A stretch of DNA of 40,565 nucleotides, taken from Ministeria vibrans ATCC 50519 (taxonomy: Eukaryota; Protista; Filasterea). This document shows, one piece after another, positions 18,496 to 28,212 of the stretch. The notes beneath the pieces were generated by a model that worked only from the letters and a program-made list of their open reading frames with translations, was not told the DNA's origin and searched no databases. The translations under genes were made by a program, and so were the position numbers. Where the stretch lies: positions 1 through 40,565 of the forward strand of contig CALSCP010001860.1 of the NCBI GenBank assembly GCA_943704425.1. Direction: 5' to 3'. The stretch's first letter is position 1. The number at the start of each line of letters is the position of its first letter.

Positions 18496-22773
<4,278 letters not shown>

Positions 22774-23209
22774 CGGGTGGCAAAGAAAGAAAGACTACGC
22801 AAAGGCCAACGGGGGGTGTATAACTAATGTCGAGAGGAGGGCGCAGACGGATGAAAAACGCACTGGGAAATTTTATTCATGATCGGAAGAAATCGTGTCT
22901 CAAACTTCACTTATAACATGAGCTAAGCACTTTGTGGTTTGGAGTGCCCCAGACAGATCAGTGCTCCCAAACAACCCGCCTCCTTTCCTAAAACATAGCA
23001 GGGTAGCAGTCGTTGGTTGCTTGTCTGCTTTTGGCGTTGTTCACTTCACCGTCTGTCTTAAATCGACCAAAGTCACACACACCAAAAGTTGAATAACGGG
23101 ATTTCACTAATTTGATTAGCACTTCAATTCTTCCTTCTACCCCACGCGCTCGTCTGGCCCCCTCCTGCTCCTCCTCGCACACCAAACCCCGTGACTTACA
23201 CGCGTCACC

Positions 23210-24242
23210 ATGGACTTCGCCGGCCAGTATGCTCCTGGCAGGCCTGCAGCCCAACCGACGACGGTATGTGACAAGCGTCTCTTTTTTGGCGTTGCACCCC
23301 GATCGCTTCTCGCCTTCCTACCGACTCCCCGCGCGGGTTTTTCTCTCTCACCCATCCCCACCCGCACCACGACCAATCCTACCGGCCGGCCTCCATCGCC
23401 AATCCGCTCCTGTTGCTCCCCCCAGTGCAGTTGTCGAACCTTTCATCCTGCGTGGCTCTTTCTGCCCACCCCCCGCGTCTCATTCCCGCTCTACTCCCCC
23501 CCACATGCTCCTATGTCCCCATGCCTCTATTCCCACCCTCCTGTCTTCTTCAATTTCAGGCGCTCTCGCCTCTTCCCTATTTTTTTTTTTTCTCGATTCT
23601 CGATTTCAAACTCGGGAGCACTTCCAGACACTTTTATGAGGCCGGCATTGTTTGTGCCATGCTCACACCACACCACACCTTGCAAACTCGTGTCTCCACC
23701 TTTCAAACGTCCCTTTCTGGCCCCATATGCAAATCGTTTTTTTTTATTTTTTTTTCTTATTAATATTTTTGGCCTTTTTTTTCAGCTTGAGACACTCGCC
23801 ACTCCCTCTCCCACACTCTCCGACTCAGTGCACTCATCAGAGTCTATGAATGTCGGCATGGCGACCGGTGGGCAGTTTTCATCGGGCGTCAATCGGTTTC
23901 GGGACTCCTCTCCTGAAACGTCACTGTCGCCTGGACAGTCTCTTTCGCCTTCCGACGGATCGAAGCAGTCATCGTCGCTCTCGCCCGAATCCGACGATTC
24001 CGCCAACTTTGTCTACAACCAAGCTATGAGTGTCGATCCAGTAGTACCTCTGGACGACGTGATGGCGTATGCGGCTGTGAACGAACTCACAAACGACGAC
24101 TTTGCGCTTTCGTTTGCTACCGACCAAACAGCGCTTCCACCCCACCAACACCAACAACCACAACCACACCAACAGCACCACCAACAACAACGCCAGCCTC
24201 CATCACAACCAATGCATTACGACACGCCGCTGTACCACGACC

Positions 24243-24274
<32 letters not shown>

Positions 24275-27200
24275 CAACAGCAGCAGCAACAACAACAAAT
24301 GTTGGAAATGATTACCATGCAACCTACCAATGGTCTTGCGTCTCCACAATCATTTCCTCTCGGCCCTATGATGCCCTCACTCGAGCCCGTCGTGGTCGAA
24401 CCTATTGCCTTGCCCACACCCACCAGCCACCAGACATCATCGTTTGACGCAACAAGTGCACGCGCTCCTTCACGCAAGCGCGCCCGTGCCTCCGCTTCCA
24501 AACCCAACTCACGCACCACGAAGCCTGCTGCTTCTGCCGCCGCCGCCGCTGCTGCTGCTGCTGCTCCTGCCGTGACCACCACGACGAGTGTGCACAGTGG
24601 CGACGTGGACGATGGATACGACGACGACGACGACGGCGCCACCACCATTGTGGCGCAAGGGCAAGCGGCGAATTTTGCGCCATCGACCAACGGTAGCGAC
24701 AGTGGCGCCCCCAAACTGCTCGGCTTTGCTCCCTCGGCGCGCGTGTTTCCTTGCGTTGCTCTGCAGTCGGACGCCAGCGATGCCTGCCCCGTCTCCATGG
24801 CCGTCAACGCCGACAAAGGATTCAGCTTCTCCGTCTTTGACGGTTCCTTTGTGTGCCAGCGCAAAAACCACTTTCAAATCACGGTCGACATTCTCGCCCC
24901 ACATCTGCCCCAATTCGTCGAGGTGACCGACCCCACCACAGGCCAGGCTGTGTGGGCGCCCATCCAGCGTTTGGGTCTGTGGGCGCGAGGTCTCAAGGTG
25001 CAAACGCCCGGCGAGACGGTCGAACTCGAAAAATCCCTTGCAGATCGTAGCAAGGTGCCCTTCACCGAGTACGCTCTGGACGAGTCGTCGTGCGACGTTC
25101 GTCGTGGTCTCTCGACACGCGCCACCATCCAGAGACTACACTTTTGCGAGACGACCGCTCACAACAACCGTCGTCGGGGCAAGCCAAACCCGCTTCAGAT
25201 GCACTTTAGTCTTGAGGTGACTCTTCGCGCGTACACTGCGCTCACAGGTGACATCCCTATCGATCTGGCCGCATGTGAATCCCAGCCCATCATTGTGCGC
25301 TCGTCCTCTCACGAAAAGTTCACCATTGACGATCCCGGTTGGCACATCAGCCAGACTGCTGGCTCCGTTGTGCACACCGGGAATGTCGGTATCAACACGG
25401 AGCACCCCGACGAGGCGCTCGTGGTACATGGCAACATCAAGGTGACCGGTGTCATTATGCAGCCTAGCGACCGTCGCATCAAGGAAGACATTGTGCCGGT
25501 GGACACGGAAGCGCAGCTCTCGCGCATTGAGGCGCTCCAGCTCTACGACTACCGTTTGCGCGACTCGTGGCGCGAGGCCACCGGACGTGATCAGCCCGAA
25601 CACGAACGCGACGTGGGCGTCCTCGCTCAGGAACTCCGCGAAGTTATTCCCACGGCGGTCACCGTGTGTCCCGGCGCGCCTATTGCAGACAAGCCAGAGC
25701 TTGCCGACGAGTCAGGCGAACCCATTCGCGATCTTTTGGTGGTCAATCCTCAGCGTGTTTTCATGGAAAGTGTCGGTGCCGTGCAGGAGCTTGCAAAGCG
25801 TACACGAAATCTGGAGGCACGTGTTGATCGTATCGACCACGACAATGTGTACGGTGCGGCCGCTGGTGCGGCCATCGTTTCCGACGAGAGCATTCAAAAC
25901 GCTCCCACCACTACTCCCCGTTCGTCCAACCTTCCTCTGCCATTTGCGCGCCACTTGCTGGACGCTGAAGATCTCGGTGCGGATGGCGACCAGGCGGTTC
26001 AGCAAGACGATGATGTCTTCGACGACAGCGACGCCAACGTGCATTCTTGGATGAACGGTGAAGATAGCCCCGCCGTGACCGCGGCAAGTCTCAAACGGGG
26101 TCTCCAGCAGCAGCAGCAGCCAGGCGGACATAATGCGCGATTTTGGCGTCGTTCGCGCACCGTCAGCTCTTCATCGCGTGAGAGCGGTGATCGAAACTCG
26201 TTCGAGTCGCCTCGACAGCTCAGCGAGGACCTTCAAGAACAACAAGCGATGTCGCACATGGTGCGTTGCGACGGCGATGGTGCACTCATTGTCACGACGC
26301 CAAGCACTGACTCGCGGATCACTCGATCGCTATCGTCGGGCAGCACGCTGCGTGGCAGCTCAAGCAAAACGTCCGTTAGCACGCCACGTCGGCAATCGAT
26401 GTTGCAACACGTCTCCACTCGCTGCCTTCTTATTGCCCTGCTTGCCATTGCGACTGTCGCCGCCGCGGCCGGTACCACTGGCTACCTCGTGAGCAACTCG
26501 TCAGCGAGCGCCTCGTCGTCCTCCATTGCCAGTCGACCTGCCCCATCCATGGCCCTTGTGGGTACCCCGCAACTTCAAATGCGCCTTGGCGAGCCCTACA
26601 CCGAACTGGGTGCAACAGCCGTTGACGCACTCGGCACAAATATCACGCATCTCGTGCAGTACCCTGAGTCACCGCCCGACGAAGTGGGCGTCTACCAGCT
26701 TGTGTACCGCGTTGTCGATGCCCTCGGTACGACGGCAAACACAACACGCACCGTCAATATAGTCCCCGCCACGTGTACACCGGCGTGCGACAACAAAGGT
26801 GTATGTAGCATCACCGGTTGCCGTTGCTTATCCGGCTGGTGTGGTCCCATCTGTAATGAGCCCGTGTGCAGTACGTGCACAAACAATGGAATGTGTGTTG
26901 CACCGGAAACGTGTGTTTGTTCATCATCCGATTGGACCGGTCCTGGCTGCGACCAGGCTTCCGGCTCCAACCCCTACCTTGACACACTGCACGTCGCCAC
27001 GGTGCTTCCGCCCAATGTGCTCACGCCCAGCACCTTTTCGCACCTTGTCCGTGACTACACCCTTCGCCTGGACAACACGTCGACCCTGATGGAAATCACG
27101 ACTCACGTCAAGATGCTACTGCGCCCGGCAAACCCCGAGTTGTCCATCACGCTGTGTTCCTCCACTCGCTGTGGCTGTTCGCTTGGCGTCGAGGCGCAGA

Positions 27201-27787
27201 GTGAAGTCTCTTTTGGCGTTTTGCCGAGCTTTGAATTTGATTTGCTTCTTCGCACTGGCACCACCACGCTGACGTTTGCCGTGGTGACCGACTCGCAAAC
27301 GCCCGAATCGGTCTGCCAAAATGATGCGCACTTCAAGTATACTTTCTCCACGGCCGTCCAGTGCCCCGAAGTTTCTTACTTCTGTGCCCCGTCGCTCCCC
27401 GAGCAAATCGAACAGCCTGCACCTGCGCCCACGTCGGCTGTCGCTGCCGCAGTCGCTGGTCCCACTTCGGCCTTGCCCGTTGCCGCTCCGGCCTTTGTCG
27501 CGACGGCCACTGCAGTCGCCACCACCGTCGCTGTCGCTGCCCAGCCGTCGACCGCTTCATCGGAGAATCCCACACCCGAGGGCGACGAACGCCAATTGCC
27601 GTATGAAGAGCCGGCTGTGGAACCCTACACGACCACCGTTGCACCTCTTCCCGACGATGCCCGACCGCTCTCGAACGCCGCCGCCACTACGGCAGCAGAT
27701 GAAGTACCAGCAGCCGGGTCCCCACGTATGTCGTCTTCTTTTGATGTTCCTGCCGACGACGCAAGTGCCGATCGCATTTTTGAATGA
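23210..27787 (+). CDS. MYRF: Myelin regulatory factor homolog: Ndt80/PhoG DBD, ICA (peptidase S74) autocleavage domain, TM helix, extended luminal region
   Basis: DBD motifs ADKGFSFSVFDGSFVCQRKNHFQITV, RLHFCETTAHNNRRRGKPNP and SQPIIVR; GNVGINTEHPDEALVVHGNIKVTG; QPSDRRIK (Ser codon 25466, Lys codon 25481); GVLAQEL; RVFMESVGAVQEL coiled coil; TM CLLIALLAIATVAAAAGTTGYLV. Probable intron at 23264-23785. Confidence 0.93.
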
Positions 27788-28212
27788 TTTTTATTTTCCG
27801 CACTCTAGTCACCATTTATGCAATATTATTAATATAATAATTATATTATTCTTATTTCTCTCCTTGAGTAAACATTTCGCTTCATTTATTCCCTAATAAT
27901 AATTATTATATTTTAACTGTTCACTTTATTGATAGAGAAAATTATTAATATTTGTCTGGGTTCCAAGATTGGACAGCCTTCACTGAGTCAGTGAGCCTTG
28001 CCGGCTGGGTATACCGTCGCGACAGTTTCTTAATAGAGAGCTGTCCTCAACAAGGGATTTTTTTTAATTTGATCCCAGTCAACAGCAATAAATTAATAAT
28101 AATAAAATTATACCATTCTTATGATTATGATAAGAATAATGTTAAACAAACCATTATTCAAAGTTCAAAAATAAAATAAAAAAAACCCAAAATAAATCTT
28201 TTTTGGCTTCCC

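Follow-up and report, generated by a model that had tools for sequence, protein, structure and literature searches.

The self-cleaving transcription factor MYRF has been studied in depth, and the reason for its membrane anchoring and the role of the outer part of the protein are still under debate. The animal proteins (human/mouse MYRF and Caenorhabditis elegans MYRF-1/PQN-47) comprise an NDT80 DNA-binding domain (DBD), a Peptidase_S74 or intramolecular chaperone auto-processing (ICA) domain with a Ser-Lys dyad, a MYRF_ICA segment, a single transmembrane (TM) region, and a non-cytoplasmic C terminus that contains an MRF_C2 domain (PF13888). Cleavage of mammalian MYRF is constitutive in cultured cells (PMC3742443). 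In C. elegans, surface localization and timed cleavage require the extracellular region of MYRF, which binds the LRR of PAN-1 (PMC8099431, PMC12803276). The window analyzed here, a stretch of 40,565 nucleotides of the genome of the marine protist Ministeria vibrans ATCC 50519, encodes a protein that shares the first four of these elements with animal MYRF and has a non-cytoplasmic region of different composition, namely, an Ig-like domain, two EGF-like repeats, and a novel beta domain in place of a detectable MRF_C2. All features described below are on the forward strand.

The protein, a MYRF-family member of 1351 aa, is encoded by one gene with its ATG at 23210, an intron at 23264-23785, a stop codon ending at 27787, and a poly(A) site near 27895. 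Exon 1 (23127..23263) comprises the 5' untranslated region (UTR) and the first 18 codons, with the start codon in the context caccATGg; RNA contigs of runs X1, X5, and X6 have their 5' ends at 23127-23153 and are spliced at 23263. Intron 1 (23264..23785; 522 nt) is of the GT..AG type with a GTATGT donor, is in frame, and contains no stop codon, and its 522 nt are skipped in RNA joints from 3 runs of 3 studies. Exon 2 (23786..27895) contains the remaining coding sequence (stop codon at 27785-27787) and an approximately 108-nt 3' UTR. A contig of X1 covers 24578-27895 and terminates in a nontemplated A run, the genomic sequence past 27895 having no such run; X5 and X6 cover 24578-27634 and 24578-27813, respectively; a poly(A) RNA-seq run of a marine metagenome adds support for the same transcript. 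Since the contigs from the 3 studies continue past 26545 without a break, the ectodomain and the transcription factor part are on one transcript. The MYRF-family gene is single in the genome, and Peptidase_S74 likewise occurs once in the 29.7 Mb. Residue numbers are counted from the ATG at 23210 and include the in-frame intron [nt = 23210 + 3*(aa-1)]; exon 2 or the read-through frame served as query in the protein searches, and the spliced exon 1-exon 2 protein was used for the length count only.

The cytoplasmic core bears out the original prediction of an intact DBD, an ICA dyad, and a TM helix. (i) The NDT80/PhoG DBD (24848..25321; PF05224, residues 547-704) was matched with an E value of 5.4e-20 and 72.8 bits against a cutoff of 27. 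(ii) The Peptidase_S74 domain (25466..25660; PF13884, residues 753-817, E 1.1e-13) starts with the S-D-R-R-I-K dyad motif, comprising Ser753 and Lys758 (nt 25466-25483), and this motif has the same position in the Choanoeca flexa MYRF and in a metagenomic MYRF, L001. (iii) The C-terminal MYRF_ICA segment (25736..25834; PF13887, residues 843-875, E 1.2e-12) is followed by a low-complexity juxtamembrane linker of 196 aa rich in Ser, Asp, Arg, and Gln (25835..26422). (iv) A single TM helix (26423..26491, residues 1072-1094) with an Arg-rich N-terminal side was called by hydropathy alone (Kyte-Doolittle 19-residue mean up to 2.16). By these matches and the single TM helix on the C-terminal side, the protein is classified as an intact MYRF-family member. 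The flanking charges of the helix, and the absence of a signal peptide at the N terminus, point to an N-in/C-out (type II) topology, and self-cleavage with release of the N-terminal part is predicted. The DBD-ICA core is 40 to 44% identical to that of animal MYRF and 43 to 45% identical to the corresponding cytoplasmic core of the choanoflagellate MYRFs of C. flexa and Savillea parva. The MYRF tree gave the protein a very long branch that falls outside the animal clade and is not joined to the choanoflagellates.

Beyond the TM helix, four modules follow in a single stop-free frame at the positions initially assigned to them; this region is cysteine rich, containing 19 of the protein's cysteines, and carries four of its five N-x-S/T sequons. 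The first module, described earlier as a bacterial-type Ig repeat resembling DUF5011, is indeed a match to the bacterial-surface-type Ig-like family PF16403 (formerly DUF5011; 26552..26761, residues 1115-1184). It scored 34.7 bits with the whole ORF, 36.9 bits with the C-terminal piece, and 40.5 bits in a genome scan (cutoff, 27), in which it was the only copy in the genome. The AlphaFold2 model of this domain (pLDDT 80-91) superposes on the Ig domains of Bacteroides BT2262-64 (Foldseek 5fq7_H; E 6e-6, TM 0.76, rmsd 1.4 Å, 29% identity). The nearest database sequences are bacterial as well (for example, Aquimarina, 35% identity), and a word search with the ectodomain among full-length proteins retrieved three bacterial PF16403 proteins and nothing else. 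The domain thus resembles bacterial surface Ig-like domains (Bacteroides BT2262-64, Moritella chitinase, and ZmpB) in sequence and fold, but occurs here as one copy within a eukaryotic transcription factor precursor.

The second module consists of two tandem EGF-like repeats of the non-calcium type (26774..26950; C1189-C1215 and C1220-C1247). A phmmer search of the Protein Data Bank (PDB) matched the pair to solved EGF domains of fibrillin-1 (E 1.1e-7), WIF-1 (4e-7), and HHIP (1.2e-6), and the AlphaFold2 pLDDT was 60-71. Pfam EGF models remained under their own cutoffs, including EGF_TEN (residues 1187-1249, E 5e-7), which is a long model; L001 was also just under (EGF_Teneurin, 24.1 bits versus 24.3). 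Of the proposal of two six-cysteine repeats, the two EGFs stand, whereas EGF1 contains seven cysteines; the additional one, C1211, is a Gly in L001, in which all canonical EGF cysteines are kept. Phmmer matches to Notch1 constructs were weak (E 3.6e-4 to 7.9e-4) and disappeared when the beta domain was queried alone, a query that gave no PDB sequence match at all, Notch included.

The third module is a lineage-specific eight-strand beta domain (26957..27409) that starts with N-x-Y-L and has a C-terminal Cys. Modeled alone by AlphaFold2 with four homologues, it gave an all-beta, moderately confident structure (pLDDT 63.7, pTM 0.65), and 11 columns are invariant across four MYRFs. Among 1.84 billion representative sequences it has one true relative (P0124, the protein of L001; E 7e-10); the second match, P0125, is a repeat-made protein and was dismissed. 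Foldseek and VIA-align comparisons of the model returned only generic Ig-like sandwiches (RhoGDI, ZP-C, CARDB, and the Y_Y_Y domain of Bacteroides hybrid two-component proteins), with a best structural Z of 7.2, inside the stated background of the tool. The ESM Atlas, searched through named and unnamed clusters, was uninformative (best score 0.76), and NCBIfam gave no match on the C-terminal 455 aa. The last module is an acidic low-complexity tail of about 126 aa rich in Ala, Pro, and Thr (27410..27784; Ala 32, Pro 18, Thr 13, Ser 11, Val 11, Glu 9, Asp 8), and it has no counterpart in three homologues, namely, L001, C. flexa, and a second metagenomic MYRF, L002, all of which stop directly after the beta domain.

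The comparison with other MYRFs revealed which parts of this ectodomain are shared. In L001 the order ICA-TM-PF16403-EGF-EGF-beta is the same, with 35 to 39% identity over the ectodomain; the domains and their order, present on a single mRNA in M. vibrans, are conserved in a second species. L001 differs in having introns inside the ICA region, a six-cysteine EGF1, and no Ala/Pro/Thr tail. The EGF-plus-beta part is common to C. flexa and L002, both of which lack the Ig-like domain; the C. flexa protein (EP00730_P001087) has a Cys-rich EGF-like part and an N-x-[YH]-L beta domain, with an unassigned region of about 110 aa after a Thr-rich stalk instead of the Ig. The C. flexa ectodomain, used as a query, matched only itself, and two scans of metagenome contigs with ectodomain alignments provided no confirmed match. 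In S. parva (EP00038_P005832), a 57-aa Ser/Thr stub takes the place of the ectodomain; several choanoflagellate MYRFs have such stubs of about 55 aa outside the membrane, and an MMETSP protist and further MYRFs also have a short one, which indicates that the core mechanism of the family can do without an elaborate ectodomain. In agreement with the earlier statement that animal MYRF has no EGF or DUF5011 modules, neither PF16403 nor an EGF family was present in any of the 120 best MYRF matches (mostly animals; precomputed Pfam lists). A literature search found no published account of an Ig-EGF MYRF architecture.

We consider it most probable, at about 45%, that the protein is a type II membrane-bound transcription factor whose ectodomain binds a partner that sets the place and time of release. 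The N-terminal cytoplasmic part with the NDT80 DBD would be freed once the phage-derived ICA domain trimerizes and cuts at Ser753/Lys758. The C-terminal part, in the ER lumen or at the cell exterior, would form a folded, disulfide-rich interaction module of the Ig, the two EGFs, and the beta-sandwich, the latter known to date from only a few protist MYRFs. Its likeliest role would be the binding of a protein or glycan partner, located either in cis or on a different surface. Judged by the analogy of MYRF-1 and its partner PAN-1 in C. elegans, this binding may control surface export, stability, or clustering for trimer-dependent self-cleavage and would thereby set the place and time of transcription factor release. 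In favor of this reading are the domain matches, the single TM helix, the unbroken poly(A)-ended RNA, the Ig and EGF matches in structure and PDB sequence, the module order shared with L001, the EGF-plus-beta part shared with C. flexa and L002, the sequons and cysteines beyond the helix, the purely synonymous run-to-run differences in the folded ectodomain, and the C. elegans findings. Against it are the constitutive cleavage of mammalian MYRF in cultured cells, the short-stub MYRFs, the moderate confidence of the beta-domain model, and the 196-aa (about 200) disordered linker between ICA and the membrane, which speaks against a rigid conformational coupling. The topology, the self-cleavage, the binding of a partner, and regulation of any kind are features that we infer.

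Several other explanations were weighed against this reading. The draft genome is fragmented (2860 contigs), so that a mis-assembly, or a read-through ORF joining a MYRF gene to a neighboring surface protein gene, could in principle create such a fusion; this was rejected as extremely improbable, since single poly(A)-ended RNA contigs of 3.1-3.4 kb from the 3 studies span the DBD, ICA, TM, and ectodomain and the same fusion lies within one 508-codon ORF on the independent metagenomic contig L001. A rather less probable reading than regulated release, which we nevertheless take seriously, is that one precursor yields two products: cleavage would be constitutive, and the leftover membrane-anchored Ig-EGF-beta trimer, produced in a constant ratio to the transcription factor, would have an adhesion, matrix, or secretory-pathway job and sense nothing. 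Li et al. proposed this for MYRF on showing that processing is constitutive and that the C-terminal part forms a homo-oligomer (PMC3742443); Ig and EGF are typical adhesion and matrix parts, and the short-stub MYRFs of other protists work without an ectodomain. It is at odds with C. elegans, in which cleavage occurs at set times and requires both the extracellular region and PAN-1 (PMC8099431, PMC12803276). Unlikely, finally, is a genuine sensor of contacts or ligands, in which outside binding would cluster or release the precursor and thereby let the ICA domain trimerize and cut. The idea of a Notch-like sensor is pure conjecture. The protein resembles Notch in being single pass, in its extracellular EGF repeats, and in the proteolytic freeing of a transcription regulator, but it has the opposite, type II orientation, the ICA domain is predicted to cut on the cytoplasmic side in an autocatalytic Ser-Lys reaction that depends on trimerization, and there is neither an LNR/HD negative regulatory region nor an intramembrane protease step. 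Pfam yielded no LNR or NOD match in the protein, which thus does not group with Notch-type receptors. Nor is the gating logic new, since the C. elegans extracellular region already controls trafficking and cleavage timing via PAN-1.

A separate question is whether the beta domain, originally labeled MRF_C2-like, is a highly diverged MRF_C2. The ancestral lumenal domain would then have been kept, the Ig and EGFs would have been inserted in this lineage, after the TM helix and ahead of C2, and the ectodomain would function as animal MRF_C2 does, in partner binding and protection from degradation. Both domains are located at the C terminus of the lumenal part, the present one is all-beta in the model, and the two share the layout L-C...C with a terminal ...Y-x-F...C; the hhalign alignment to animal C2 is colinear (query 62-121, template 69-134), and its score of 17.1 exceeds that of 199 of 200 column shuffles, a null that is lenient because shuffling destroys strand periodicity. 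However, Pfam gave no PF13888 match at an E value of ≤1, the hhalign probability was 1.4-1.6%, and an animal-C2 HMM scored ≤1.8 bits on the protist ectodomains, within the range of shuffles (up to 11.4 bits). The label thus failed by Pfam and the HMM, with hhalign as a weak hint, and we regard the homology as less likely than not. MRF_C2 is missing from many non-animal MYRFs and is therefore not defining for the wider family.

The outer part of a protist MYRF thus consists of recognizable binding modules that recur in a second lineage and, in part, in a choanoflagellate, indicating that the non-cytoplasmic region acquired modules before or alongside the origin of animals. If the protein were a sensor, it would represent a one-protein surface-to-nucleus pathway older than animals and a doubly chimeric precursor, in which a eukaryotic transcription factor is combined with a cleavage module of phage origin and an Ig module of bacterial type. 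The architecture by itself does not demonstrate signaling: the build is real and conserved, and the sensor role is hypothetical. The single gene copy offers a simple system for asking if surface events gate MYRF release. Variants between sequencing runs comprised three synonymous and no nonsynonymous changes in the folded ectodomain, and in the juxtamembrane linker the length of a CAG repeat was polymorphic at 26104, run X6 having an inserted CAG.

The gene model of the window's MYRF is sound. The protein belongs to a known family and has a new variant of ectodomain, which is conserved in at least one further lineage. A frame without stops spans 23210-27787 (+); residues were numbered from the ATG at 23210 through an in-frame intron (nt = 23210 + 3 × (aa − 1)). 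RNA contigs from three runs belonging to three studies skip 522 nt at a GT..AG joint, which, together with the genomic sequence, places intron 1 at 23264-23785 (+), between exon 1 (about 23127-23263, +; ATG in good context, 18 codons) and exon 2 (23786-27895, +). The spliced protein has 1,351 residues by local count, and all searches used exon 2 or the read-through frame. A single contig of RNA run X1 covers 24578-27895 unbroken and terminates with a non-templated stretch of A (the genome at 27895 reads taataataatt, not A(n)). Contigs of runs X5 (24578-27634) and X6 (24578-27813) are concordant with it, and a marine-metagenome poly(A) RNA-seq run also tiles the MYRF region. The DNA-binding domain (DBD), ICA domain, transmembrane (TM) helix, and entire ectodomain thus share one mRNA, as originally predicted; as far as these contigs show, from 24578 on the transcript neither ends nor is spliced before 26545. 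The RNA contigs break only at 24228-24305 and 24522-24577, CAG/GCN repeats at which short-read assembly stops. One low-depth (4×) marine metagenome contig lacks a base at 27047; this would shift the frame inside the beta domain and most likely reflects an error of assembly. At 22682-23263, a minus-strand SLC12-type transporter gene and the 5' end of MYRF are arranged head-to-head, and no RNA contig covers 22900-23083, between the two genes.

The part up to the TM helix is as first described: Pfam identified NDT80_PhoG (the DBD; residues 547-704), Peptidase_S74 (753-817) with the S-D-R-R-I-K dyad at its start, and MYRF_ICA (843-875), and hydropathy revealed one strong TM helix (1072-1094) with arginines on its N-side. 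Since arginines flank this one helix on its N-side and an N-terminal signal peptide is absent, the N-terminus is expected to be cytoplasmic and the C-terminus outside. The segment that follows the helix contains 19 cysteines and all but one of the protein's five N-x-S/T sequons. The tail contains a second, weaker hydrophobic stretch (27479-27541; Ala/Val/Thr-rich, Kyte-Doolittle 1.65 to 1.78). Were this stretch to cross the membrane, the ~80 acidic residues at the end of the protein would face the cytoplasm; no positive charges flank it, and it is therefore probably not a TM helix.

The proposed bacterial-type Ig module was borne out by two approaches: (i) PF16403 (Bact_surface_Ig-like, formerly DUF5011) matched residues 1115-1184 above the curated cut-off, and (ii) in Foldseek searches the domain superposed on Bacteroides BT2262-64 Ig domains (TM 0.76, rmsd 1.4 Å, 29% identity), as well as on Moritella chitinase Ig domains and a Big_3 domain. 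In the AlphaFold2 model of the ectodomain, pLDDT was 80 to 91 for the Ig domain and 60 to 71 for the EGFs. The EGF pair (partial EGF_TEN match, residues 1187-1249) matches the solved EGFs of fibrillin-1 (E 1.1e-7), WIF-1, and HHIP. The predicted count of six cysteines per repeat needs amending for EGF1, which has one more, C1211; the orthologue on metagenomic contig L001 has Gly at this place.

For the third module, the beta domain, sequence tests gave no support to the earlier label MRF_C2-like. Pfam detected no match to PF13888 (MRF_C2, the animal MYRF lumenal domain) in the protein at E ≤ 1. With an HMM trained on the C2 regions of 33 animal and sponge sequences, protist ectodomains scored at most 1.8 bits, inside the range of 2,000 shuffles (up to 11.4 bits), and a profile-profile comparison with MRF_C2 yielded a Prob of 1.4 to 1.6%. 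The two profiles nevertheless align colinearly, with a score (17.1) above 199 of 200 column-shuffled nulls, a lenient null; we regard the domain as no more than a candidate member of MRF_C2. Among 1.84 billion representatives searched with HMMER, the sole true relative of residues 1250-1400 was P0124 (E 7e-10), encoded on L001. There, a 508-codon ORF begins inside the ICA domain and continues with a TM helix, PF16403, an EGF pair, and a copy of the beta domain; upstream exons carry an S-D-A-R-V-K dyad. The two ectodomains are 35 to 39% identical, with every canonical cysteine retained. At L001 1-700, introns rich in (CT)n and (CA)n microsatellites split the ICA region, whereas the window's gene has none there.

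Inspection of the C-terminal ends of the top non-animal MYRF matches showed that Choanoeca flexa MYRF (EP00730_P001087) and the 1,405-aa MYRF of metagenomic contig L002 have a Cys-rich EGF-like part with this beta domain behind it; both, unlike the window's protein, lack the Ig. Their beta domain starts with N-x-[YH]-L directly after the last EGF cysteine and has a cysteine at its end. The four-sequence alignment has 11 invariant columns; folded alone with it, the domain was modeled as all-beta with eight strands (pLDDT 63.7, pTM 0.65), and structure searches with this model returned only generic Ig-like sandwiches (best Z 7.2, within the tool's stated background). The C. flexa and L002 proteins also have in common a ~110-aa region (P0011 residues ~560-690; L002 2747-3499) with two flanking cysteines, which follows a Thr-rich stalk, precedes the EGF-like part, and has no Pfam match at E ≤ 0.01.

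In agreement with the prediction that animal MYRF has no EGF or DUF5011 modules, neither PF16403 nor an EGF family was listed for any of the best 120 of 1,042 MYRF matches. MRF_C2 is present in animals and the sponge Oscarella. Amphioxus MYRF has additional EF-hands: in three Branchiostoma MYRF-like proteins (P0012, P0013, and P0018), PF13405, PF13499, and PF00036 precede MRF_C2 in the non-cytoplasmic region, a further instance of an outer part gaining modules. The outer part is just a Ser/Thr-rich stub of 53 to 71 aa in Savillea parva (EP00038_P005832), in an MMETSP protist, and in two metagenomic proteins. In a separate protist group (P0014, P0019, P0025, and P0030), the ectodomain measures ~90 aa, has six conserved cysteines, and is unrelated to the EGF-beta module. 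This variety agrees with the poor conservation of the MYRF lumenal domain (PMC3742443), so module gain there is unsurprising in itself. The genome (29.7 Mb, 2,860 contigs) contains a single Peptidase_S74 and a single PF16403, each of them in the MYRF gene, and the beta domain at no other place. Full-text literature searches retrieved no paper describing a protist MYRF ectodomain.

The MYRF ICA domain drives trimerization and Ser-Lys self-cleavage, freeing a trimeric NDT80-type factor, and mammalian cell lines show constitutive cleavage (PMC3742443). In C. elegans, full-length MYRF reaches the cell membrane. The extracellular region of the worm protein binds the PAN-1 LRR and is needed for localization, and release is timed, being inhibited by the juxtamembrane region as well as by the tail of PAN-1 (PMC8099431, PMC12803276). 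The logic of the proposed signaling is thus already published for animals, and a signaling role here is a candidate. We assign a probability of roughly 45% to the Ig-EGF-beta region being a partner-binding module: binding would set trafficking, stability, or clustering of the protein, which in turn would fix when the factor is released. The main rival, in which cleavage is constitutive and the C-terminal trimer has an adhesive or secretory role of its own, appears rather unlikely to us. A disordered linker of ~200 residues separates the ICA domain from the membrane, which makes Notch-like mechanical coupling unlikely; a route through clustering or a co-receptor would be more natural.

In a tree of the DBD-ICA core, the window's protein forms a very long branch outside a supported clade of animals and is not grouped with the choanoflagellate sequences; a unicellular relative of animals is a plausible host. 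The sequence is present in marine samples. Run X6 has an extra CAG at 26104, where the juxtamembrane linker has its Gln run, and differs at 13 single bases over 3.2 kb, with mostly synonymous changes; it therefore represents a different strain or sibling lineage. Between strains, the folded ectodomain differs by three synonymous and no nonsynonymous changes, a small hint of constraint.
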